IMG/VR virus record: IMGVR_UViG_3300018080_008436
Location: 310,001-374,000 of that record
Strand: one strand, 5' to 3'
DNA: 64,000 nucleotides
Shown: positions 2,447 to 48,400 of the stretch, piece after piece
Position numbering within the stretch: position 1 is the first letter of the stretch
Layout of the letters: every line of letters begins with the position of its first letter
The notes under the pieces: model-generated
Told to the model about the DNA's origin: nothing
Seen by the model: the letters and a program-made list of their open reading frames with translations, nothing else
The model's database searches: none
Made by a program: the position numbers and the translations under genes

Positions 2447-2473
2447 TGTAATACTCTAAATTTTATTGCAAAA

Positions 2474-2681
2474 CTCCAAGCTCATAGGCAGGATTCTGTT
2501 TAATATTTTCCATCATTTATCTATTGGCATCAACCCGACCATTATAGAGTAGCTCACCCTCTAGGTCTGTTTGAATTGCAACCTCGGTAGTGCAAACGAA
2601 TCTCTTCTCCTACCTTAAGCTAAGTTGTCCTGACCTTCCTCTCATGAGCATTACCTCGTAGAGCGATGGATCGGCTTGAAA
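2474..2681 (-). ncRNA. rnpB: RNase P RNA, minimal (catalytic domain with vestigial specificity domain)
   Basis: GAGGAAGGUCAGGAC (2641-2627) and ACAGAAUCCUGCCU (2499-2486) form P4 with the bulged U; P1 UUUCAAGC/GCUUGGAG, P2 UCCAUC/GAUGGA, P5 CAAC/GUUG, P6 UAGCUUA/UGAGCUA, P7 GGUAG/CUACC, P15-17 with GGU loop, UAGAUAAAUGA motif. Confidence 0.88.
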
Positions 2682-2686
2682 ATGTT

Positions 2687-4826: not shown

Positions 4827-5016
4827 TCACCATTATACAGCCAAGATTAGTATCAAAGTAACTAAGTCCATATTCTTCCAGAACTTCTAGGACCAGTTCC
4901 CTCATTTTAAGGGAATTTCCTGTAACAACCTCAAAAGGAGGGTCATAATTAAAAATATGAGAGTCAAGTAAAGACCGAACATCTTGATGCTTAACCCCAT
5001 GTAAATCTAACTTCAT
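4804..5016 (-). CDS. stand-alone Smr-domain protein
   Basis: MKLDLHG...VVTGNS...NLG motifs; ATG at 5016 overlaps the nadD TGA. Confidence 0.7.
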   Translation of the reverse strand: MKLDLHGVKHQDVRSLLDSHIFNYDPPFEVVTGNSLKMRELVLEVLEEYGLSYFDTNLGCIMVIEEPNKR

Positions 5017-5666
5017 TTTCCGTGTAACCAACCCTTCCGATTATGAGTCTCTTTCATTTGAACCTCTTCGGAAGGGACATAAAGACAGTGGTCCTGGATA
5101 TATCGTTGAACTTCTTCGTCCAAATATGGCAAAAAGTCTGATCTGCCATGTTTTTTGAAGTGATCTCTTGCCATAGTAGACGAACATTCGGTAATTTTGT
5201 CTTCTACGTCCAAGAAAAGATGGGGAGGATTCTTATACCATCGATATTTCTTCTTCAATTCGATTCCACTTCTTGTTACAACAACAAATTTGGCAATTTC
5301 CCGTAATTTTTTGAAATTATGCCAGTTAATGAAGTTGTTTACGTTGTCAGCACCAATGATAAAACTGATATCAACATCAAGTTGTGGGTCTTTGAGGAGG
5401 GTTTGGACTAATTCGAAGGTCGAACCACTCAGTTCATGTCTAATTTCGTAATCAAATACATGAAGTTTCGGATTTTTTCTGCAAGCGATAGCGCACATCC
5501 TGAGTCTGTGTAAATTAAGCTCTAAATTCTTACCAAATCGATGTTTATTGCAAGGCAAGAGCCAAACTTCATCAAATTTTCCTTTTTCAAGGACAAATTC
5601 AGCTACTTGTATATGAGCAAGTGTTGGGGGATTGAAAGCCCCGCCAAGAATGGCAATTTTAGTCAT
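5013..5666 (-). CDS. nadD: nicotinate/nicotinamide nucleotide adenylyltransferase
   Basis: ILGGAFNPPTLAH, FIIGADN...W, VVTR, SST.AR motifs; GGAG RBS before ATG 5666. Confidence 0.9.
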   Translation of the reverse strand: MTKIAILGGAFNPPTLAHIQVAEFVLEKGKFDEVWLLPCNKHRFGKNLELNLHRLRMCAIACRKNPKLHVFDYEIRHELSGSTFELVQTLLKDPQLDVDISFIIGADNVNNFINWHNFKKLREIAKFVVVTRSGIELKKKYRWYKNPPHLFLDVEDKITECSSTMARDHFKKHGRSDFLPYLDEEVQRYIQDHCLYVPSEEVQMKETHNRKGWLHGK

Positions 5667-5684
5667 AGTTTTCTCCAATGATTT

Positions 5685-5778: not shown

Positions 5779-5915
5779 TGATGGACAAGACGGGATTCGA
5801 ACCCGCAAATCGAGATGCCTCACCCATTGCTTAGGAGAAAAATAACTCCTGCCCATGGTAGCGACATTACTCTTAAGACCAGAGCCTCAACTTTGCCAAT
5901 TTAAGTTACTTGCCC
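5779..5915 (-). ncRNA. tRNA-like RNA with G3:U70/A73 acceptor and ~60 nt structured insert in the anticodon arm
   Basis: Acceptor GGGCAAG/CUUGUCC-A, D arm ACUU/AAGU, T arm GCGGG-UUCGAAU-CCCGU; ends UCA rather than CCA. Confidence 0.7.
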
Positions 5916-5929
5916 GTCTTGTCAAATTT

Positions 5930-6051
5930 TGGCGGATGAGGTAGGATTCGAACCTACACTGTAGCGGTTTCTGTTTTTTGGTTGCTGAAGAGAACCTTTT
6001 TGTCAAGTTCATTTTTTGGACCGCCGTCTCTGCCAGTTGGACTACTCATCC
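5930..6051 (-). tRNA. tRNA with ~45 nt insertion (possible intron) in the anticodon loop; identity uncertain, possibly Leu(CAG)
   Basis: Acceptor GGAUGAG/CUCAUCC-GCCA, D arm, stem GCGGU/ACCGC enclosing a ~52 nt loop ending CAGAA, intact T arm. Confidence 0.75.
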
Positions 6052-6062
6052 ATATTTATAGT

Positions 6063-6090
6063 AATATAGCCTTAAAATAAGAGATTGCAA
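6063..6090 (-). promoter_or_regulatory. sigma70-type promoter inside the tRNA region
   Basis: TTGCAA-N16-TATATT, 12 nt upstream of the 6051 tRNA 5' end. Confidence 0.6.
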
Positions 6091-6304: not shown

Positions 6305-7042
6305 TTATACCCCAAAAATCAATAATTCAAAATCGCCATTCTCATGTTCTACGATTGCAGAGCAATGCTCTACCCAATCTCCGCAGTTATAGTAGTCAAT
6401 CCCATCAATTTTTTTGATTATAGGAGAATGAACATGACCACATATAACTCCATCGCAATGATTCTCTTTGGCATACTCTGAAAGGAGACCTTCAAACTCT
6501 CCAACATAAGTAACAGCTTTTTTAAAATTTTCCCTGGCAAACTTTGATAAACGAACTCTTTTCACTCCGAACATCCTTAAACATCTTGCCAGGAACTCAT
6601 TCATTGAAACAAGAGTGTCATAACCCCAACTTCCAACCTTTGAGATCATGACTCCAATTCTTGAAAAAAGAATGAAATCAAACTTATCTCCATGAGTGAT
6701 GTAATACTTCTTTCCAAAACTGTGATAATATGTTTCTTTACAAATTTCCAGGTTCGGATAATGAAAACTGTCCAAAAGTTCCATCATACCATGATCATGA
6801 TTTCCTAAAACATAATGGACGTTACAGTGTTTTGACATTTTTAGAAGTCTTCTAATGACTTCTGTTTGGTTTTTATCCCATTTAGTTCTGTCTAATCTCC
6901 AAAGATCAAAGATATCTCCGATAAGATATAAATTGTCACATTCAGTCTCTTTTAGGAATTTAAGTAGTTCTTTAGATTTGCATCCAACACTGGCCATGTG
7001 GCAGTCTGAGATGAATACTGCTCGGTACTTAGTTTTACTCAT
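6305..7042 (-). CDS. calcineurin-like metallophosphoesterase, UDP-2,3-diacylglucosamine hydrolase (LpxH-like) family
   Basis: ISDCH, GDIFD, GNHD, HGD, GHVH, NCGDW motifs; AGGAGG RBS before ATG 7042. Confidence 0.85.
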   Translation of the reverse strand: MSKTKYRAVFISDCHMASVGCKSKELLKFLKETECDNLYLIGDIFDLWRLDRTKWDKNQTEVIRRLLKMSKHCNVHYVLGNHDHGMMELLDSFHYPNLEICKETYYHSFGKKYYITHGDKFDFILFSRIGVMISKVGSWGYDTLVSMNEFLARCLRMFGVKRVRLSKFARENFKKAVTYVGEFEGLLSEYAKENHCDGVICGHVHSPIIKKIDGIDYYNCGDWVEHCSAIVEHENGDFELLIFGV

Positions 7043-7130
7043 ATTTTTCCTCCTATAAGTAGTAAGGAATAATACTGAGAAAACAGGATAAAACCTACTC
7101 AATAATGAGTTGTTAACCAAGTATTAATAT

Positions 7131-7221
7131 TGGCAGAGGGAGTGGGACTCGAACCCACAAACCGCATTTCTACAGCTTACATGATTTCAAATCAAGCTCT
7201 TCATCCAGCCAGATTCCCTCC
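7131..7221 (-). tRNA. tRNA-Ser(UGA) with degenerate D arm
   Basis: Acceptor GGAGGGA/UCCCUCU-GCCA, loop UU-UGA-AA, long variable arm. Confidence 0.8.
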
Positions 7222-7227
7222 ATTGAT

Positions 7228-7313
7228 TGGTAGCTAGGAGGGGGGTCGAACCCCTACGCCTTTCGGCATTAGTTTCTAAGACTAACATGTCTACCAAGTT
7301 CCATCACCTAGCC
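7228..7313 (-). tRNA. tRNA-Leu(UAG)
   Basis: Loop CU-UAG-AA, variable arm GCC-GAAA-GGC, ACCA end. Confidence 0.95.
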
Positions 7314-7318
7314 ATCTT

Positions 7319-7395
7319 TGGTAGCCTCGCTGGGAGTCGAACCCAGAACATACAGTTTCTAAGACTGCCCTCTCTGCCAATTGGAGTACGAGACC
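7319..7395 (-). tRNA. tRNA-Leu(UAG), short variable loop
   Basis: 77 nt cloverleaf, loop CU-UAG-AA, ACCA end. Confidence 0.9.
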
Positions 7396-7403
7396 ATTAA
7401 ATT

Positions 7404-7489
7404 TGGCGGAAGGTAGGAGATTCGAACTCCTATGCCCGTGAGGACGACAGTTTAGCAAACTGCTGGCTTACCATTCGCCACAACCTTCC
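7404..7489 (-). tRNA. tRNA-Ser(GCU)
   Basis: Loop UU-GCU-AA, long variable arm, GCCA. Confidence 0.92.
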
Positions 7490-7491
7490 AT

Positions 7492-7578
7492 TGGTAGCCA
7501 GGGAGGGCCTCGAACCCTCACTCCCTTTCGGGAACTGGATTTTGAATCCAGCGCGTCTGCCAATTTCACCACCTGGCC
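7492..7578 (-). tRNA. tRNA-Leu(CAA)
   Basis: Loop UU-CAA-AA, long variable arm, ACCA. Confidence 0.95.
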
Positions 7579-7589
7579 AATAAATTTAA

Positions 7590-7657
7590 TGGAGCTAATG
7601 AGATTCGAACTCATCCCCCTGCCTCTATGGGCAGTTCGGCTACCGTCTAGTAACCCC
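7590..7657 (-). ncRNA. 68-nt tRNA-like RNA with G3:U70/A73 acceptor and 6-nt anticodon-position loop
   Basis: GGGGUUA/UAGCUCC-A acceptor, CUGCC-CAUAGA-GGCAG, AUGAG-UUCGAAU-CUCAU; no CCA. Confidence 0.65.
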
Positions 7658-7689
7658 AATTGGTTGCGTATAAACATATAAACAATATT

Positions 7690-7777
7690 TGGTAGTCTCG
7701 GGGAGATTCGAACTCCCACCTCCTTCGCGGAGACAACGACCTCAACGTTGCGTGTCTGCCAGTTCCACCACGAGACC
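7690..7777 (-). tRNA. tRNA-Leu(GAG)
   Basis: Loop UU-GAG-GU, long variable arm, ACCA. Confidence 0.95.
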
Positions 7778-7824
7778 ATTATAAGTGGCCATAACTGACG
7801 AATTAACCCCAGTTTTGGCCGTTT

Positions 7825-7844
7825 ATTCGTAATATATTACGAAT
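7825..7844. repeat. 20-bp perfect palindrome in a tRNA spacer
   Basis: ATTCGTAATATATTACGAAT. Confidence 0.8.
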
Positions 7845-7847
7845 TAT

Positions 7848-7923
7848 TGGTAGCCCTGGTCGGATTCGAACCGACACTTTACGGATTTTAAGTCCGCTCC
7901 CTCTGCCGTTGGAGTACAGGGCC
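7848..7923 (-). tRNA. tRNA-Leu(UAA), short variable loop
   Basis: 76 nt, loop CU-UAA-AA, ACCA. Confidence 0.9.
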
Positions 7924-7928
7924 ATTTT

Positions 7929-7990
7929 TAACTGTTTTTCTCGTTATAGTGGAAAATATAACTGTTTTTCCAGTTTTGTAACTGTTTTTC
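7929..7990. repeat. three 12-bp direct repeats
   Basis: TAACTGTTTTTC at 7929, 7959, 7979. Confidence 0.85.
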
Positions 7991-7998
7991 CAGTAAAA

Positions 7999-8090
7999 TG
8001 GTGAGCAGGGAGGGATTCGAACCCCCAATGTTTACCCAAAGGGGACAGATTTACAGTCTGCCGCAACACCACCATCGTTGCCGCCTACCC
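7999..8090 (-). tRNA. tRNA-Tyr(GUA), extended D stem
   Basis: Loop CU-GUA-AA, G1:C72, long variable region, ACCA. Confidence 0.9.
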
Positions 8091-8094
8091 ATTT

Positions 8095-8182
8095 TGGTCC
8101 TGGTGGTAGGTAACGATCCTACTTGATGCGCAATGATGATAGTTTTACAGACTACCCCGTCTCCTTAACGGTCTACACCAGG
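8095..8182 (-). tRNA. tRNA-Tyr(GUA) with C1:G72 and atypical T loop
   Basis: CCUGGUG/CACCAGG-ACCA, loop CU-GUA-AA, T loop AUCGUUA. Confidence 0.85.
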
Positions 8183-8184
8183 AT

Positions 8185-8206
8185 AAAAAGGTGACTTAAG
8201 TCACCT
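8185..8206 (-). terminator. terminator-like or processing hairpin inside the array
   Basis: AGGTGAC-TTAA-GTCACCT followed by TTTT. Confidence 0.45.
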
Positions 8207-8293
8207 AATGCCTCTGGGTCAGACTTACCAATACCGTCATATTGGGTCCGATAGCCCAGTAAGGACTTTAAGCGTCTGGTTTTCCCCAGACCC

Positions 8294-8381
8294 TGGAGCG
8301 CGGTGAGGGATTCGAACCCTCGCGGACATAAGTCCCATCAGTTTTGCAGACTGTGCCATTAAACCACTCTGGCAACCGCGC
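8294..8381 (-). tRNA. tRNA-Cys(GCA) with long variable arm
   Basis: Loop CU-GCA-AA, U73-CCA, variable hairpin GGAC-UUAU-GUCC. Confidence 0.88.
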
Positions 8382-8387
8382 ATATTA

Positions 8388-8458
8388 AGCACGATGTCGG
8401 AATCGAACCGACTTCTGCGGGTTTGCAATCCGCCGCCTCACCATCTGGCTCATCGTGC
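8388..8458 (-). tRNA. tRNA-Cys(GCA), no encoded CCA
   Basis: GCACGAU/AUCGUGC-U, loop UU-GCA-AA. Confidence 0.88.
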
Positions 8459-10353: not shown

Positions 10354-10610
10354 ATGATATCCAAAGTGTTTTGGGTTCTTTTGGCGACAGTTCCGTATTT
10401 GGAACCGTATCGAGTGGCAGAGAAACGATAATAATCTTTAATCTTCTGCTGATAATCTTCGTCAAAAGAATTGATGTCAACCCTACCTTCTAACACATTA
10501 ACTGCATCAATTCGGAGTTGTTGGACATCGGGAGGAACCCCAAGTACATCATCACCTATCTGCTCAGGCCCAATAGGTTCTTGGGGATACAGTTGATTTT
10601 GATTCGCCAT
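10350..10610 (-). CDS. hypothetical protein
   Basis: 86 aa, GAGG RBS. Confidence 0.65.
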
Positions 10611-11622
10611 ATGCCTCTCTCAAAGCTTTTACCAAGCCTTCCCTTTTATCTTTACCAATATACTTCGAGGGAATCTGAGGCAATACCTTCACAAAAATAG
10701 TCCCACCATTCAAGAAGTCAACTTTGATCTCATAGAATTTTTCAGTGTCCCAATCTGACTTTAGTTGAAACGTGACATCCTTCTTCTTGAACAGTTTAAC
10801 GGTAATGTTTTCTTCAGCTAAAATCTTATCAATTGTAACTTGAACAGATAGAAAAAGATCCGATCCTTTCTGAACAACCCCATCTTGCTCAGAAGGATAA
10901 TTAACAACAACGTAATGAGACCCAGTATAAGTAGAGTCATCCGACTGATAAATCGTATTTCCCTTGTCTTTGAGTCTCATACTGGCATTATGATTGATGT
11001 TTGGGGGGATCTGTATTCTCGTTTTTGAACGAGTTTGCATGTAGCCAACTCCTTTGCATTTCTCGCAAGGCTTGAATCTTTTTCCACTTCCACCACAGGC
11101 TCCACAAATGTTTATATATTGGAACCCAGGTTGATTTACGTGTTGTTGCCCTTGACCATTACAAGTAGGGCAAACAATTTCTTTTCCAAGAAATGCCCCA
11201 GTTGTTTTGCAAGCATCGCAAGCAACAACCTGTTGTATAGTGTGGTTTTTCTTACAACCAAATATCGCTTCTGCTAGAGTAATGCTAATAGATGATCTCG
11301 AATCTGGATTGATCCGTTTTCTGGAAGGCTGATTGCTTCGTTGTCCCCCAAAGAAGTCTTTGAAAACACTCCAAGTTCTTGAAGTCCCAGAATGCGGATG
11401 TGGTTGTTGATTTCCTATCGTACCAAACCTGTCATATTGAGCTTTCTTTTGGGCATCCGAAAGGACTTCGTAAGCTAAAGAGATCTCTTTAAACTTCTCT
11501 TCTTTTGCCTCATCGCCAGCATTTTTATCAGGATGGTATTCCTTAGCTAATTTTCGATAAGCTTTCTTAATCTCATCCTGTGAAGCTTCTCGCCCCACCC
11601 CTAATACTTCATATGGATTCAT
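10564..11622 (-). CDS. dnaJ: DnaJ chaperone
   Basis: J domain with HPD, four CxxCxGxG-type repeats, C-terminal domain. Confidence 0.92.
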
Positions 11623-13931
11623 CTGGAACGCTTTCTCTTTCTTTTTCTAATGACAATGTCGCCACTTTTATCAGCAGTTATAGTCAGAGTATAACTGTAC
11701 TGATCGATATCCTCAATTTCAAGGATTGTGTCTGCAACAAGTGGCTCAACTTGTTTTGAAATAATTCGATCAAGTGACATGGCATTCATACCATGTTCAG
11801 AGTCATGATATTTAACAATAGCTTCAGCTATCTTCGCCCCAATCTTAATACTAATGTATTTGTGATTAACGCGCTGAGCGAATTCTGTAAGTCTCATTTC
11901 TACAATGTCTTGAAGATTCTCTTTCGTCAGTTCCACAAATGGTACGAAGGCATCGACACGATTAACGAATTCTTCACCATAAGATTTCTTACAGAAGTCA
12001 ATTAAACGAGTTCTCTCATTTTCCACAAGGCTTTTTTTACCTTTTGAATTAAAACCCATGGAAGCTGACTTAGAAATATTCAAACCGAAGTTACCTGTCA
12101 TGATGAAGAAGATATTTTTGCAGTCAACCTTTTCACCTACTGCACTAGTAATGGTTCCTTCTGACATAACTTGTAAAAACAGCCTCATGACTTGTGGATG
12201 AGCTTTCTCAATTTCATCGAGCAGTAGGATGCAATAAGGTCTTCTTTTGATTTTGTCAACTACAACATCAACATCCTTGAAACCCACATATCCTGGTGGA
12301 CTCCCAATTATTTTGCTAATTGAGTGTTTTTCAGAGTATTCTGACATATCAATCTTAATCAGATTTTTCTCGCTTCCAAAAATTGCTTGAGATAACTGTT
12401 TGGCGGTATAAGTTTTCCCTGTTCCACTTTGCCCTCCAAAAGTAAGAACTCCAATGGGTCTGTCAGGGTTTCTAACTCCGCTATAAGCATTTCTAAGTAC
12501 CCTACAAACGCTTGTAACGGCTTCTTCTTGTCCAATTACTCTTTTCTTCAGAAATTCCTCAGTCTTTTTAATTCTTTCATGTGTATCCCACATGATAACT
12601 TCTAAAGGAACTCCGCATTGTTTACTGATGACTTTGGCAACATCATCTGAGGTAATTATGGGAGTGTGTTCGTCATTTTCCGACCAAGCGTTTTGAGCAC
12701 ATGCAGTATCCATACAGTCAATTGCTTTATCTGGGAAGTATTTGGTTGGTCTGTATCGTTTGGTCAGATTGATAATGGAGTCAATAGCATCGTTTGAGAT
12801 CGTGCATTCATGATACTTTTCAAAACGATCTTTGATTCCCATCAAGATTTTTTTGACATCTTCATCTGATGGTTCATCAATATTGACAACTCCAAAGCGT
12901 CTTGATAATGCCCCATCGTCAACAAAATGTTTTTTATATTCTTGATGAGTTGTGGCCCCAATACACTTCAACTTCCTTGCAAGAGCAGGTTTAAGAATGT
13001 TTGCGGCATCCATAGCGGAGCCAGCACCTCCTGCACCTACAATCGTATGAATTTCATCAATAAACAGAATGACATCTGGATCATCTTCAACGGCCTTGAT
13101 TAGATCCTGTATCCTTTTTTCAAAATCTCCACGATATTTTGTCCCTGCAACCATTCCTGCCATATTGAGGGAATAAATCCTACACCCTCTGAGTTTGGGA
13201 GGGACAGCATTACTGATGATTCTTTGAGCGATGCCCTCAACAATAGCAGTCTTCCCGACTCCAGCTTCACCAACTAAAATTGGATTTGATTTTGTTCTTC
13301 TGCAAAGGATTGTAATTGTTTCTTCGATTTCTGAATCTCTTGAAATTATCGGATCAAATTCTCCGTTGTTTGCCAACTCTGTCATATCAGTGCAGTATTG
13401 GTCAATAATAGAGTCTTTGGTCTTTTTCTTCGAACTTCTTGAAGTTTTAACTGTGCTTTTGTGAGATTTGCTACTTAAGATCTCTTCAATGCAACTCTTG
13501 AACTCCTTGCATTCTTTGGAAATGATTCTCTTAAGATTCAGGTGAAGATCCATGATAGATATGAACAGATGTCCAAGTCCAACGATTTTGTGGCCATTAT
13601 CGCGAGATAACTTATCTGCCGCTTTGCACACTTCAACGATTTCTTTTGAAATATTAATTTCGTCAAAGGTAACCCCAGAGTCCCCACTCTCATTTTCCTT
13701 TTGTCTATTGGAAAGGAGTCTCTTAAACTTCTTAACGCAAGTGTCTAAATCAACTCCATGCTCGTGCAACGCTAATGTTACAACGTTTTCTCCAGTGAGC
13801 AATGTTCCAATCAAGAATGACTCTGGATATAGGCAATCCACATGAGCATCAATACTTGCGGCTTTAGCAAATACGATCATGTGTAGAACATCGTTACTAA
13901 ACCTGTCATACATCTTCTGGTTTTCTGACAT
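11619..13931 (-). CDS. ClpA/ClpC-family AAA+ ATPase
   Basis: Clp N domain, [46 protein letters not shown]. Confidence 0.93.
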
Positions 13932-22899: not shown

Positions 22900-24450
22900 T
22901 TAGATATCAAAGATGGTAAAATTCTTACCTGTATCCATGATCTCATCTATTTCCCCCAATATATAGTCATCGCCAGCGGAATTAATGAGATTAAATCTCT
23001 CTTCAGCTTTCAGGAGTTTCTTCACCTTATTATTCTGTTTGGTAAGAAATCTGGCTTTGTGGTTATAAGTAACAACAATAGATTTGTCTCTGGGATTTGC
23101 AGAACCTCTATCTGGTCTGAGAGTCCTGCCAACTCTTTGATAGACTCTGGTTGCAGATGCACCACCTCCAGCAAGCAAAGCGGCATCAAGTGTAGGAATG
23201 TCCAAACCCTCATCTGCAAGAGTAGTTGCAATCATGCACATGATATTTTTATCTCGCAGATCTTGGATACATTGTCTACGTTTTTTCCCTGTCATCTTCC
23301 CAGTTACAAATGGAGTATTTGGGATAAGTTTCTTCAATGCCTCTCCATGATGATAATGCTTAACAAGAATTAACGTACTGAGATCTCTGCTGATAAGATG
23401 ATTGGCTGTCCTGGCTACATGAGCATGAAAAGCATCATTCTTTGTTACACATTTTGAATAAACGGACGAGAATGTTGATGGTACACTATCATGATGAATG
23501 GGATCAAATAATATATATGGAGTGAGAAGATATCCATGGTCAATTAGGTATGATGCGCTAATGTCAACAATCTTCTTGCCAAATAAGCCCTGTAAGACGA
23601 TCTCTGCGTTATCTTCCCTATAAGGGGTAGCCGTACCGCCAAAGCGCCAGTAAGCGTTTGGAGAGGCCCCTATAACGTCTCTACAGATCTTTGAACTGGC
23701 ATGATGACTTTCATCAAGGTATAAGCCCTTTGTGGCTCCTAGAAGCTTTCTAATGGCTTTATTTTTATCATGTGAGAGAATATCGTTGTCATCCCATACA
23801 TCTTCATTATCAAACATATAGTCGCTGATCTTAAAAACGTCCTCTTCATGAAGACTTCTGACCACAGATTGAATCGTACAAACATTTATATCTTTGATAT
23901 CAAAATTTCCTGCACCAATTCTTCCGATTGGAACGTTCAGAGTGGAAGATAGGGTGTCGTAAGCCTGATCAAGCAAATCTCTTGTTAGAACGTAGAACAT
24001 AAATGGAGCAGTTTTGATTTCGCCAATAAGCTGAGACACCATCATAGTTTTTCCGCCACCTGTAGCGACTTTAAGTATCCCTCTAGTTCTACTCAAAGCT
24101 CTGCTAATAGTGAAATCCTGATAGTCTCTTTGTTCAAAACATTTAGGGGGTTGGAATTCAAGGAATGGGATGTTCTTTTCAGGAGCAGACCTAATGTCGT
24201 CCTTTTTATGAGGAATGTTGTATTTATTCAATACATTTATCACTAGAGACAACATTCCCGTAAGGAATGACTGTCCTTTATTTTTGTGATAAAACCTTAT
24301 ACGGCCATCCCATTTCTTATCTTGATAAGATTTAGCGAATGGAGCGGCAGGAGAGAAGTACGAAAGATGTCTATGAAGTTCATCTTGTACGTAGTCTGGT
24401 AAATGTCCCACAATTTTCGAATTTGCATTTCCGATCAGTATTTTTACCAT
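22900..24450 (-). CDS. superfamily 2 helicase (UvsW/ResIII-like)
   Basis: RDYQ, ATGGGKT, DESHH, TATP, EGLDIP, QRVGRTLR. Confidence 0.9.
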   Translation of the reverse strand: MVKILIGNANSKIVGHLPDYVQDELHRHLSYFSPAAPFAKSYQDKKWDGRIRFYHKNKGQSFLTGMLSLVINVLNKYNIPHKKDDIRSAPEKNIPFLEFQPPKCFEQRDYQDFTISRALSRTRGILKVATGGGKTMMVSQLIGEIKTAPFMFYVLTRDLLDQAYDTLSSTLNVPIGRIGAGNFDIKDINVCTIQSVVRSLHEEDVFKISDYMFDNEDVWDDNDILSHDKNKAIRKLLGATKGLYLDESHHASSKICRDVIGASPNAYWRFGGTATPYREDNAEIVLQGLFGKKIVDISASYLIDHGYLLTPYILFDPIHHDSVPSTFSSVYSKCVTKNDAFHAHVARTANHLISRDLSTLILVKHYHHGEALKKLIPNTPFVTGKMTGKKRRQCIQDLRDKNIMCMIATTLADEGLDIPTLDAALLAGGGASATRVYQRVGRTLRPDRGSANPRDKSIVVTYNHKARFLTKQNNKVKKLLKAEERFNLINSAGDDYILGEIDEIMDTGKNFTIFDI

Positions 24451-45493: not shown

Positions 45494-48400
45494 TTAATCG
45501 GTTGTTACTGTCCATCCTTTTCCTTGAAGGTTTGATTTTGCTGTTAGTCCTGCTCCAGTTGGGGCAGTATTCCCTAACGTATTAACGATTCCATTACTCA
45601 ACCCATTCCCATCCAAGTCTATCAATATATTATTAACTGCTGTAGCAGAGAAACTATTATTTCTACAGTCTACATCATCCAAGGATGTGTTACTTGACAA
45701 ATCCAACGTTGTTAATGAGTTATTCCTACATTCCAAATCTTCTAGCACTGTGCAATTTGATACATCTAACGTTGTCAACGAATTATTTGAGCAATGGAGG
45801 ATTTCCAAATCAACTAACAGAGATAAATCAAGCGAAGATATCGAATTGCTCCCACAGTTTAATTGGAAAAGATCAGGGTGATCTTCAACAGCCAATGAAG
45901 TCAAACCATTAGACGGAACTGAAAGTACAAACAGACTTTGGTTAGTAAGATCAAGACTTGTTAGGAGAGGGTTGCTAGTGATACTAACATTATTTACACT
46001 AGTAAGTTGTGAAATGTCTATGGAAGTAATGTCTGAGTCATTTACAACAACCTGAGTTGGAGACGTTGGCGATATTCCTGAGGCAAATGCAGTATGAGAT
46101 GGCTCACCATCCGTATAAGTGTGAGTTACGCTGGAAGTATCGAAGTATTTTGTCTCATCATCCATGTCCCAGTCAGTATTCCCCACTGCTCCACCACCTC
46201 CCAACGCGAAGAAGATACTATCTGGACTTGCAGATTCCGTAACAATCGTCATAATTGGGTGACCAATGCCAGATGAAGAGCTAGAATATTCTTCGGAAGA
46301 AGTACTTGAACTTTCTGAATAACCTTCTGAACTTGAACTTTCGCTTTCTGAACTACTTGATTCACTTTCTGAACTACTTGATTCACTTTCTGAACTACTT
46401 GATTCTGAATATTCTTCGGAACTACTACTTGATTCAGATTCTGAACTGCTTGATTCGCTTTCTGAACTGCTTGATTCGCTTTCTGAACTGCCTGATTCGC
46501 TTTCTGAACTTTCACTCTGTGATGAGGACGATTCAGACTGAGAACTACTGGATTCTGACTTGGACGAACTTGATTCACTTTGAGAACTAGAACTCTCTGA
46601 CTGAGAACTAGAACTCTCTGACTGAGAACTACTAGATTCACTTTGAGAGCTTGAACTCTCTGAGTAGCCTGCCGAAGAAGTACTAGAACTTTCAGAGTAT
46701 CCTCCTGAACTAGAAGAACTCTCTGATTGGGAACTACTAGATTCACTCTGAGAGCTTGAGCTTAAGCTTTGACTACTTTCTGATTGAGAGCTACTGGATT
46801 CACTCTGAGAGCTTGACGATTCAGAATATCCTTCTGAACTAGAAGAACTATCGGACTGTGAACTATTTGATTGACTACTGGAACTTTCTGAGACTCCTCC
46901 TGAACTGACAGAACTTTCTGAATAACCAAAAGAAGAGCTAGAGCTTGACGACTCCCCTAAACTCGAAGAACTACTTGAATCAAGAGAACTGGATGAACTA
47001 TCGGAACTACTGGTATATTTAAGAACTGCGCTACAATCTTCGGTTCCTCGCCCCATGTTCCACATACCTTCCCTTTCGATGCTGTTAACAACTTTGTCAA
47101 CAATCAGAAAGTTATCTAATACTCCATGGAACCAATTCCCTACACTTGATGAACCCATATAAAATTCACTATTCGAATTGGCCATTGTTACATATCCAAC
47201 GTCCACTTGAGAGCCAGAGATATCTACGTTCCTCAAATAAATTTTGATATCAGAAGTGTCATAAGTTACTACAAGATAGTTCCATTTGCCTTTTAGTAAC
47301 GATTGGGAAGAACTTATTGATCTTGTGTTGATCCCATTGATCAAATCAAATTTTACTATTCCGTTCTCAACATATAAATCCCAAACCCCATCTTTAGAAG
47401 CGATATACTGTGTTCCTGTAATACTGTATGGCTTTACCCAACAAACTATTGAGAAGCTTTGATCACTGACTCCATCAGTAAAGTTTAGTTTGGTTCCAGC
47501 AGGAACCTCAATGTTCTGTTGAAGTAAGTTATCAAGAACAATAGCGTTGTTTACTTTTCCAACAACAGACCTGGTTGAAGTATTTATTGCCACTCCATTC
47601 TGTTGCAAAGTTCCAATTTGAGAAAAGTCACCAGAAGAGTCCCACAAAAATGAGTTCCCATAATTCTCATTCAATTTCCAATATCCAACAATATTGTCAC
47701 AGAGATCCCATTCTGTCTCCTCTATGGTACTGGATGAACTAGATGAAGATGAAGAACTGGAACTGAATAAGACGTTTTCTCCTTCTACTAGAGTAACCAA
47801 CCCATCTTTCATACCAACAACAAAACTCATTCCAAATTCTTGAATAGAACTATTGTCATAATCAAATTGAGCTAAGGTGTCTTCATCATCGACAGGAATA
47901 GTTATCGTTTCGATATTGGATTTCAAAATCTCCCAAGTTGATGGAACGTTTGCTTGTTCAATCTCCATCATAAAAGATGAGGAGAAGTTAGCTGTGTAAA
48001 GATCGCTATTGAAACCAGCCGCTGTCCAGAATGCAAGATCATATGTTGGTCTTTGGACCGAAGAAACTTCAATTGAGTCAATTGATGACAGAATCTCTAT
48101 TTCTCCTTCTTCATCTGGAGATTCAAGAATCAATCCACCTCCATCAGCAACATGCTCTTCTAAAATGTCAGGAATCTCTTCTGCGAAATCATCTGGAAGA
48201 CCAATAAAATAGATAACATCAAATTCGTCAGCCCCAAATGTTTTAATATACTCTGTATCTATTTCTCTATAGGTTACTCCTTCAATTGAATCTATGTAGT
48301 TTTCGTAATATGTTTCAATGCTTTTAACAACACCAACATGCACTACTTCTCTTGGCAATTTCTGCCCAGCCCACTTGAGGAATGTTCTCCAAAAAGTTAT

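Follow-up and report, generated by a model that had tools for sequence, protein, structure and literature searches.

A conserved family of inserts in the tRNA genes of huge phages

Described inserts in tRNA genes and the locus compared with them

Bacteria and their phages are thought to have only self-splicing (group I) tRNA introns, whereas protein-spliced tRNA introns are a hallmark of archaea and eukaryotes. The nearest precedent for the gene considered here is the set of tRNA "introns" of Lak megaphages (Devoto et al., 2019, Nat Microbiol, PMC6784885), which were reported as "highly conserved" and "enigmatic", were not classified by Rfam, and were suggested to be possibly common in large phages. 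The inserts shown in Table S6 of that paper are 75-115 nt long, lie after the anticodon (from about position 37), and contain T-arm or minihelix-like pieces. Archaeal tRNA introns with a bulge-helix-bulge (BHB) motif, including the non-canonical and "transposing" introns of Thermoproteales (reviewed in PMC4090602; reportedly also in Fujishima et al., 2010), are short and protein-dependent, occur at non-canonical positions including the anticodon stem, recur with similar sequences in different tRNA genes, and are joined by RtcB. Bacterial group I introns, such as those of cyanobacterial tRNA-Leu(UAA) and Azoarcus tRNA-Ile, interrupt the anticodon arm as well but are self-splicing ribozymes of at least about 200 nt. 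In full-text literature searches, no description of the module reported here or of RtcB-linked tRNA introns in phages was found, and a 2026 review of jumbo phages cites introns only in a list of mobile elements and does not discuss tRNA introns (PMC13282480).

We examined a 64,000-nt stretch (the window, bases 310001-374000) of a 476,248-bp IMG/VR virus record, which sits inside a 524,692-bp metagenome contig from a sediment sample. G+C content was about 39%, and most genes lay on the minus strand. A gene for the outer-membrane protein LpxR and a neighbouring gene 60-64% identical to proteins of Lentisphaeria and Verrucomicrobia pointed to a Gram-negative host, perhaps from the PVC group. ARAGORN found 59 ordinary tRNA genes in the genome and 69 when introns were allowed. 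The gene of interest, t5, and its surroundings are made up of the following parts:

Window 5930-6051, minus strand: insert-bearing tRNA gene t5, 122 nt, with an encoded CCA.
Window 6020-6024, minus strand: 5' strand of the anticodon stem (GCGGU), forming 5/5 Watson-Crick pairs with 5964-5968 (ACCGC).
Window 5974-6017, minus strand: 44-nt stretch (AAAAAAU to CCAAAAAA) whose removal leaves the loop CC|CAGAA, as inferred by comparison with the short-arm Leu loops CUUAGAA and CUUAAAA.
Window 5982-6017, minus strand: conserved module, with A-rich lead (6017-6011), hairpin GAACUU (6010-6005), loop GACAAAA (6004-5998) and AGGUUC (5997-5992), and tail UCUUCAGCAA (5991-5982).
Window 5969-5973, minus strand: CAGAA, remnant of the anticodon loop (CAG, A37, A38), matching (U)AGAA of tRNA-Leu(UAG) at genome 317319.
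Window 6063-6090, minus strand: sigma-70-like promoter match TTGCAA-16-TATATT directly upstream of t5 (9 of 12 matches; a consensus match only).
Window 5782-5915, minus strand: neighbouring insert-bearing tRNA-like gene t6.

An earlier note, made from the sequence alone, had described t5 as a tRNA with an insert in its anticodon loop, and this observation was confirmed. The acceptor stem (GGATGAG/CTCATCC) was paired 7/7 and followed by UA, a D arm (GTCC-AACTGGCAG-AGAC, 3 bp plus a C.A mismatch) and G26; the anticodon stem enclosed a 51-nt loop (about 52 nt in the earlier note) with the internal hairpin and two copies of CCAAAAAA (6019-6012 and 5981-5974), and was followed by a 6-nt variable loop (TACAGT), a T arm (GTAGG-TTCGAAT-CCTAC, 5/5), G73, and the encoded CCA. 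Standard ARAGORN missed the gene, whereas ARAGORN with introns allowed found it, and the Rfam tRNA model (RF00005) scored window 5933-6051 at 36.8 bits against a gathering score of 29 (E = 7.9e-5 over 12 kb), treating about 50 nt as an insertion in the anticodon arm. The 5' part was closest to the short-arm tRNA-Leu(UAG) at genome 317319, while the acceptor and 3' part were closest to tRNA-Ser(UGA) and the short-arm Leu(UAA), so that the remark on mixed identity also held. DNA contigs of three public runs were compared with the locus; contigs of one run, which may be the source sample, were identical over the whole gene and showed neither variants nor an insert-less allele, but the contigs listed for the two independent runs do not cover the gene. 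No RNA run containing this phage was found.

A conserved insert family

The insert shared 89-91% identity over about 35 nt with two other places in the genome, both of which lay in insert-bearing tRNA genes. Alignment of eight copies showed an A-rich lead, a 6-bp hairpin with a G-started loop, and the tail YNUNCWGCAA, with seventeen invariant positions in 48 columns. All six hairpin pairs were formed in 8/8 copies, with compensatory changes at two pairs and a U.G-to-C-G change at a third, indicating a constraint at the RNA level. A covariance model built from this alignment (R1), whose E-values are rough and which its own building copies match by construction, found eight places in the genome, seven of them in tRNA-like genes; the eighth was weak and lay outside any tRNA. 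Five were Rfam-positive insert-bearing tRNAs, namely t1 (genome 198200-198319), t2 (282508-282626), t3 (195772-195897), t4 (282011-282138), and t5, which R1 scored at 60.3 bits at window 5974-6021; the sister copies scored 40-47 bits with the Rfam tRNA model.

The remaining two tRNA-like places differed in architecture. Copy 10 (genome 281812-281926, minus strand) is a circularly permuted tRNA gene, in which the 3' half (281926-281893; anticodon-stem 3' strand, variable loop, T arm, acceptor 3' strand) precedes a 49-nt linker with the module and the 5' half (281843-281812; acceptor 5' strand, D arm, anticodon-stem 5' strand). It has no anticodon loop and is followed by a terminator-like hairpin, and ARAGORN called a cloverleaf once the halves were put in normal order. 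Circularly permuted tRNA genes occur in Cyanidioschyzon merolae; copy 10 differs in belonging to a phage of bacteria and in carrying the module in its linker. Copy 11 (genome 239000-239092, minus strand) is a 93-nt minimal tRNA-like RNA with a perfect acceptor stem, T arm and CCA, in which a GC hairpin stands in place of the D arm and the module in place of the anticodon arm. The neighbouring gene t6 scored 34.6 bits with the Rfam tRNA model and has G3.U70 and A73 (the alanine identity set); its 60-nt insert (window 5823-5882) carries a diverged hairpin plus UAAGCAA and was not detected by R1, and its removal would give the loop UUGAGGC, that is, a GAG (Leu) anticodon loop.

Outside this genome, four further genes carried the module on three unrelated or distantly related phage contigs. 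The strict DNA pattern had no match in one genome for each of 185,579 prokaryote species but matched three foreign metagenome contigs, of which L043 and L044 carry the same gene (t7) and L047 carries two genes (t8 and t9, the latter at L047:2481-2603 with the same GCGGU/ACCGC stem as t5). A looser pattern added t12 in the 43%-complete IMG/VR record G002 (locus L059). Within IMG/VR, the only match to the strict module pattern, and the only match to the t2 acceptor/D-arm pattern, was a 100% identical 296-kb record. L043 was syntenic with genome 269-284 kb at 50-80% protein identity, with t7 sitting where t2 sits, whereas the L047 and G002 loci shared almost no detectable proteins with this genome, so the module is far better conserved than the proteins around it. 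In L047 the two module genes lie just upstream of tRNA-Ser(UGA), as t5 and t6 do here.

Other tRNA-like features were observed. Four ARAGORN "intron" calls (genome 23700, 78389, 79219, and 209460) were not counted because neither the Rfam tRNA model nor R1 confirmed them; those at 23700-23896, 78389-78589, and 79219-79380 (minus strand) have inserts of 71-124 nt, and two of them (23700 and 78389) have perfect acceptor stems and T arms, with the shared sequence GACGTTGGTTCGAATCCAAC and a CCA end, so that they may be a different insert class or other tRNA-like RNAs. Between the tRNA genes, at window 7134-7222 and 7587-7657 (minus strand), elements not called by ARAGORN gave a tRNA-Sec-model hit (38.3 bits, cut-off 47) and a weak tmRNA-model hit (18.5 bits). 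In window 7228-8458 (minus strand) and genome-wide, many anticodons occurred twice, once in a normal tRNA and once in a tRNA with a long variable arm although the amino acid is not class II (Cys 71/88 nt, Gly 74/87, Asn 74/91, Ile 78/91, Glu 76/91, Lys 75/88), together with an 89-nt tRNA with a Met (CAU) anticodon; conversely, short-arm tRNA-Leu genes lie at window 7319-7395 and 7848-7923, which may bear on charging identity or recoding. A tRNA with a CUA anticodon (an amber suppressor by anticodon) lies at genome 409748-409822 (minus strand), although window ORFs read well under code 11.

Position of the insert and gene content of the phage

All single deletions leaving a tRNA-sized middle region were enumerated, with the joined forms assessed by stem and loop counts only. 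In six genes (t1, t2, t3, t7, t8, and t12) the best solution removed one contiguous stretch between nucleotides 28 and 29, restoring a 5-bp anticodon stem and a 7-nt loop with U33 and R37. The two bases before the insert (UU, UU, CU, GU, GG, CU) pair with positions 42-43 (AA, AA, AG, AC, CC, AG), and the three bases after it pair with 39-41; in all, 29 of 30 stem pairs were Watson-Crick, with four different 27-28/42-43 combinations. The restored loops were as follows:

t1: CUGCAAA, anticodon GCA, U73, fits Cys.
t2: UUGAGGA, anticodon GAG, A73, fits Leu.
t3: CUAUUAA, anticodon AUU, G73, the Asn loop with G34 changed to A.
t7: AUUACGA, anticodon UAC, A73, fits Val.
t8: UUUACAC, anticodon UAC, A73, fits Val.
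t12: AUUUCGA, anticodon UUC, A73.

Several of these loops were identical, or nearly so, to the loops of the phage's ordinary tRNAs (CUGCAAA for Cys; CU[A]UUAA against CUGUUAA for Asn; UUGAGGA against UUGAGGU for Leu), and the discriminator base mostly fitted the anticodon (U73 with GCA, G73 with AUU, A73 with GAG and UAC). The orthologues t2 and t7 share acceptor stem, D arm, module, and position, but their anticodon arms are wholly different and both canonical. In t4, t5, and t9, by contrast, the 5-bp anticodon stem is complete, the insert lies in the loop, and no single deletion yields U33. For t5, the 51-nt loop of the primary transcript does not have the 7-nt form with U33 and a purine at 37 of a functional decoder, and the best deletion (44 nt) gives CCCAGAA (anticodon CAG, C33, G73). 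The genome has no ordinary tRNA-Leu(CAG), and CUG makes up about 10% of Leu codons.

Known classes were examined in turn. No Rfam intron or ribozyme family (including hammerhead, twister, pistol, hatchet, and HDV) matched at E <= 1 in 26 kb covering all copies, and inserts of 41-53 nt (44-51 nt in t5) with a single 6-bp hairpin are too short for a group I or II intron. By inspection of t1 and t5 around the inferred junctions, no BHB motif (a 4-bp central helix flanked by 3-nt bulges) could be drawn, and PF01974 (EndA) gave no match in the 476-kb genome, while archaeal controls matched. As in the Lak megaphages, the inserts lie in tRNA genes of a huge phage and are conserved in sequence between genomes, but they lie 5' of the anticodon (28/29 or in the loop), are shorter, and share a hairpin-GCAA module. 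A Y RNA was rejected because no TROVE (Ro) domain was found and the best YrlA (RF02553) score was 27 bits against a gathering score of 69, at junctions of adjacent tRNAs only. A CRISPR-repeat mimic was rejected because the strict pattern had 0 hits in the 185,579 species genomes and the looser pattern gave 24 hits, about our own estimate of the chance number, of which 22 were single per contig and two lay on one Sedimentisphaerales chromosome and were not array-like; none scored with R1. A tmRNA-like reading frame starting at GCA was dropped by eye since only one copy runs into a stop codon, and an internal promoter (TTGACA inside the module) was set aside given the lack of a consistent -10 element, a 19-nt spacing, and the covarying stem.

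The phage encodes RtcB (PF01139, 224-226 bits, genome 198526-199671), starting about 200 nt downstream of t1, and a T4 Rnl2-type nick-sealing RNA ligase (genome 98.7-99.7 kb). Both enzymes are common in large phages as tRNA-repair enzymes (PMC7824862), so their presence is weak support for splicing; RtcB was not found in the incomplete record G002, and the RtcB neighbourhoods of 21 other phages showed normal tRNAs or none, with no inserts. The genes next to RtcB are unannotated or host-like; a 354-aa gene after RtcB was considered as a nuclease candidate but dropped, being a conserved hypothetical protein of Lentisphaeria and Verrucomicrobia next to LpxR. A DHH-family phosphoesterase (genome 280005-281108) lies next to the t2/t4/copy-10 cluster and is conserved in L043. 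The window also encodes DnaJ and a ClpB-like double AAA+ chaperone, a calcineurin-type phosphoesterase (Metallophos) between tRNA genes, and a cytidylyltransferase-like gene beside the tRNA cluster (window 10564-13931, 6305-7120, and 5013-5678, minus strand); the loci of relatives of the Metallophos gene hold no tRNAs. Homing-endonuclease genes lie beside t3 (HNH) and t12 (GIY-YIG, SegE-like). A 214-nt RNase P RNA-like gene (window 2469-2682, minus strand), 3 kb from a tRNA cluster, matched the bacterial class A model at 48.9 bits (E about 4e-13, below the gathering score of 100); P1-P4 and the conserved catalytic-core strands align, while the whole specificity domain is replaced by about 36 nt, which would be unusual for a phage-encoded RNase P RNA. 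This hit was reproduced on 5 kb but not on a 381-nt slice. Dispersed or tandem repeats of about 100-300 bp at 77-92% identity are shared between window 46284-46589 and genome 208600-210100.

Interpretation and alternative explanations

We propose, with a probability of about 0.4, that the insert is an intervening sequence removed from the precursor RNA by proteins rather than by self-splicing. Six members keep a canonical anticodon arm, with mostly fitting discriminators, and the t2/t7 pair has done so since the insertion across long divergence, suggesting that these genes are, or recently were, under selection as tRNAs. From established ribosome structures, a bulge of about 45 nt at 28/29 faces the 30S P-site contacts of the anticodon stem, and an unprocessed RNA is therefore unlikely to decode. 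The linkers between module and tRNA helix vary in length (6-9 nt on the 5' side, 6-15 nt on the 3' side), which led us to reject fixed cut sites measured from the module, whereas the two exon ends always abut within a continuous anticodon helix, so the junctions seem to be set by the tRNA helix. In this model, an endonuclease would recognise the module and cut, the single-stranded flaps would be cut or trimmed back to the helix, and the nick would be sealed by RtcB (3'-P/5'-OH ends) or by the T4 Rnl2-type ligase (a 3'-OH/5'-P nick in duplex RNA). The logic is analogous to that of intervening sequences of bacterial 23S rRNA, which are cut out of a helix without re-ligation, and of U-deletion editing in kinetoplastids, with cutting, trimming, and REL/Rnl2-type nick sealing templated by the opposite strand, although the enzymes and substrates differ. 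The analysis itself establishes the family, its conservation, the 28/29 position, and the restoration of canonical anticodon arms, whereas removal at the RNA level, the enzymes, and the order of steps are deduced without RNA evidence and without an identified endonuclease. For t5, removal of 44 nt would give a Leu(CAG)-like tRNA with C33 and G73, so it is among the least tRNA-like members and may be degenerate or diverted.

The interpretation in the earlier note was thus supported in part. Its statements that the insert is far too short for a group I or II intron, that its removal can give a CAG anticodon, that identity elements are mixed (Leu-like D arm and loop remnant, Ser-like acceptor and G73), and that any removal would need proteins were right, and ligases of the kind it named are encoded. 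It had set conservation of the insert position in relatives as a test, and the position is conserved in a relative with about 65% protein identity, though for the pair t2/t7 rather than for t5. It could not see that the insert belongs to a family, most members of which carry it in the anticodon stem. A splicing endonuclease, a canonical Leu tRNA from this gene (given C33 and G73), and the nuclease-decoy idea remain unsupported.

The main rival, which is only somewhat less likely, is that the module is permanent and is itself the functional part, as a protein-binding site, a decoy or sponge for a host anticodon nuclease or other RNA enzyme, or a regulatory RNA, on a tRNA scaffold that gives RNase P/Z processing, CCA addition, and stability. 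The near-identity of the module across phages whose proteins are 50-80% identical or not detectably related, the promoter-like site of t5, and copies t4, t5, t9, 10, and 11, which suggest that the module has a role of its own, favour this view, and stable tRNA-like RNAs of unknown function occur in the tRNA clusters of T4. However, a pure scaffold would not need the canonical arms of six members or their maintenance in t2 and t7 through complete sequence turnover, and no partner protein is known.

It is unlikely, though possible, that the module is a selfish or protective DNA-level insertion, either a small mobile element or one that breaks the target site of free-standing homing endonucleases, with the interrupted genes being pseudogenes or becoming so. 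Near-identical copies in different tRNA genes and phages, the adjacent homing-endonuclease genes, the 8-nt direct repeats of t5 (CCAAAAAA), and copies 10 and 11, which look like rearrangement products, are compatible with it. On the other hand, there is no consistent target-site duplication (microhomology at the junctions is only 1-3 nt), covariation in the hairpin and across the split anticodon stem argues for selection on the RNA, all stems are intact in every copy, and no transposase or end structures are present in 45 nt. Less likely still is a dead tRNA-Leu(CAG)-derived pseudogene with no functional link to the other copies: C33, G73 with a Leu-like body, the 6-nt variable loop, and the chimeric origin fit, but all four stems are perfect or nearly so, the CCA is encoded, and the same stem plus module is kept in t9. 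A new self-cleaving or self-splicing RNA, forming a three-way junction with the anticodon helix and leaving 2',3'-cyclic phosphate and 5'-OH ends for RtcB, has the invariant positions, the geometry, and the RtcB gene adjacent to t1 in its favour and remains possible but is very doubtful, since no Rfam ribozyme or intron family matched at E <= 1, the junction strands (7 + about 20 + 0 nt) do not fit the hammerhead core, two cuts would be needed from about 45 nt, and the linker lengths vary.

A broader and slightly more tentative reading is that huge phages of bacteria carry a mobile family of short tRNA introns, lacking a BHB motif, that are removed by a so far unknown protein pathway, which would be the first protein-dependent tRNA splicing system in the bacterial world and would come with a permuted tRNA gene and a phage-encoded RNase P RNA that has only the catalytic domain. 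The Lak megaphage inserts raised the question of such introns in 2019 and it was left open; the present family makes it testable because it has a short, well-defined conserved module, a recurrent and exactly inferable junction (28/29), several paralogues with different anticodons in one genome, and candidate ligases encoded nearby. If the inserts are spliced, a new RNA-processing pathway and a new kind of mobile intron would follow. If they are not, the module is a conserved phage RNA element displayed on tRNA scaffolds, with a likely role in the conflict between phage and host over tRNAs.
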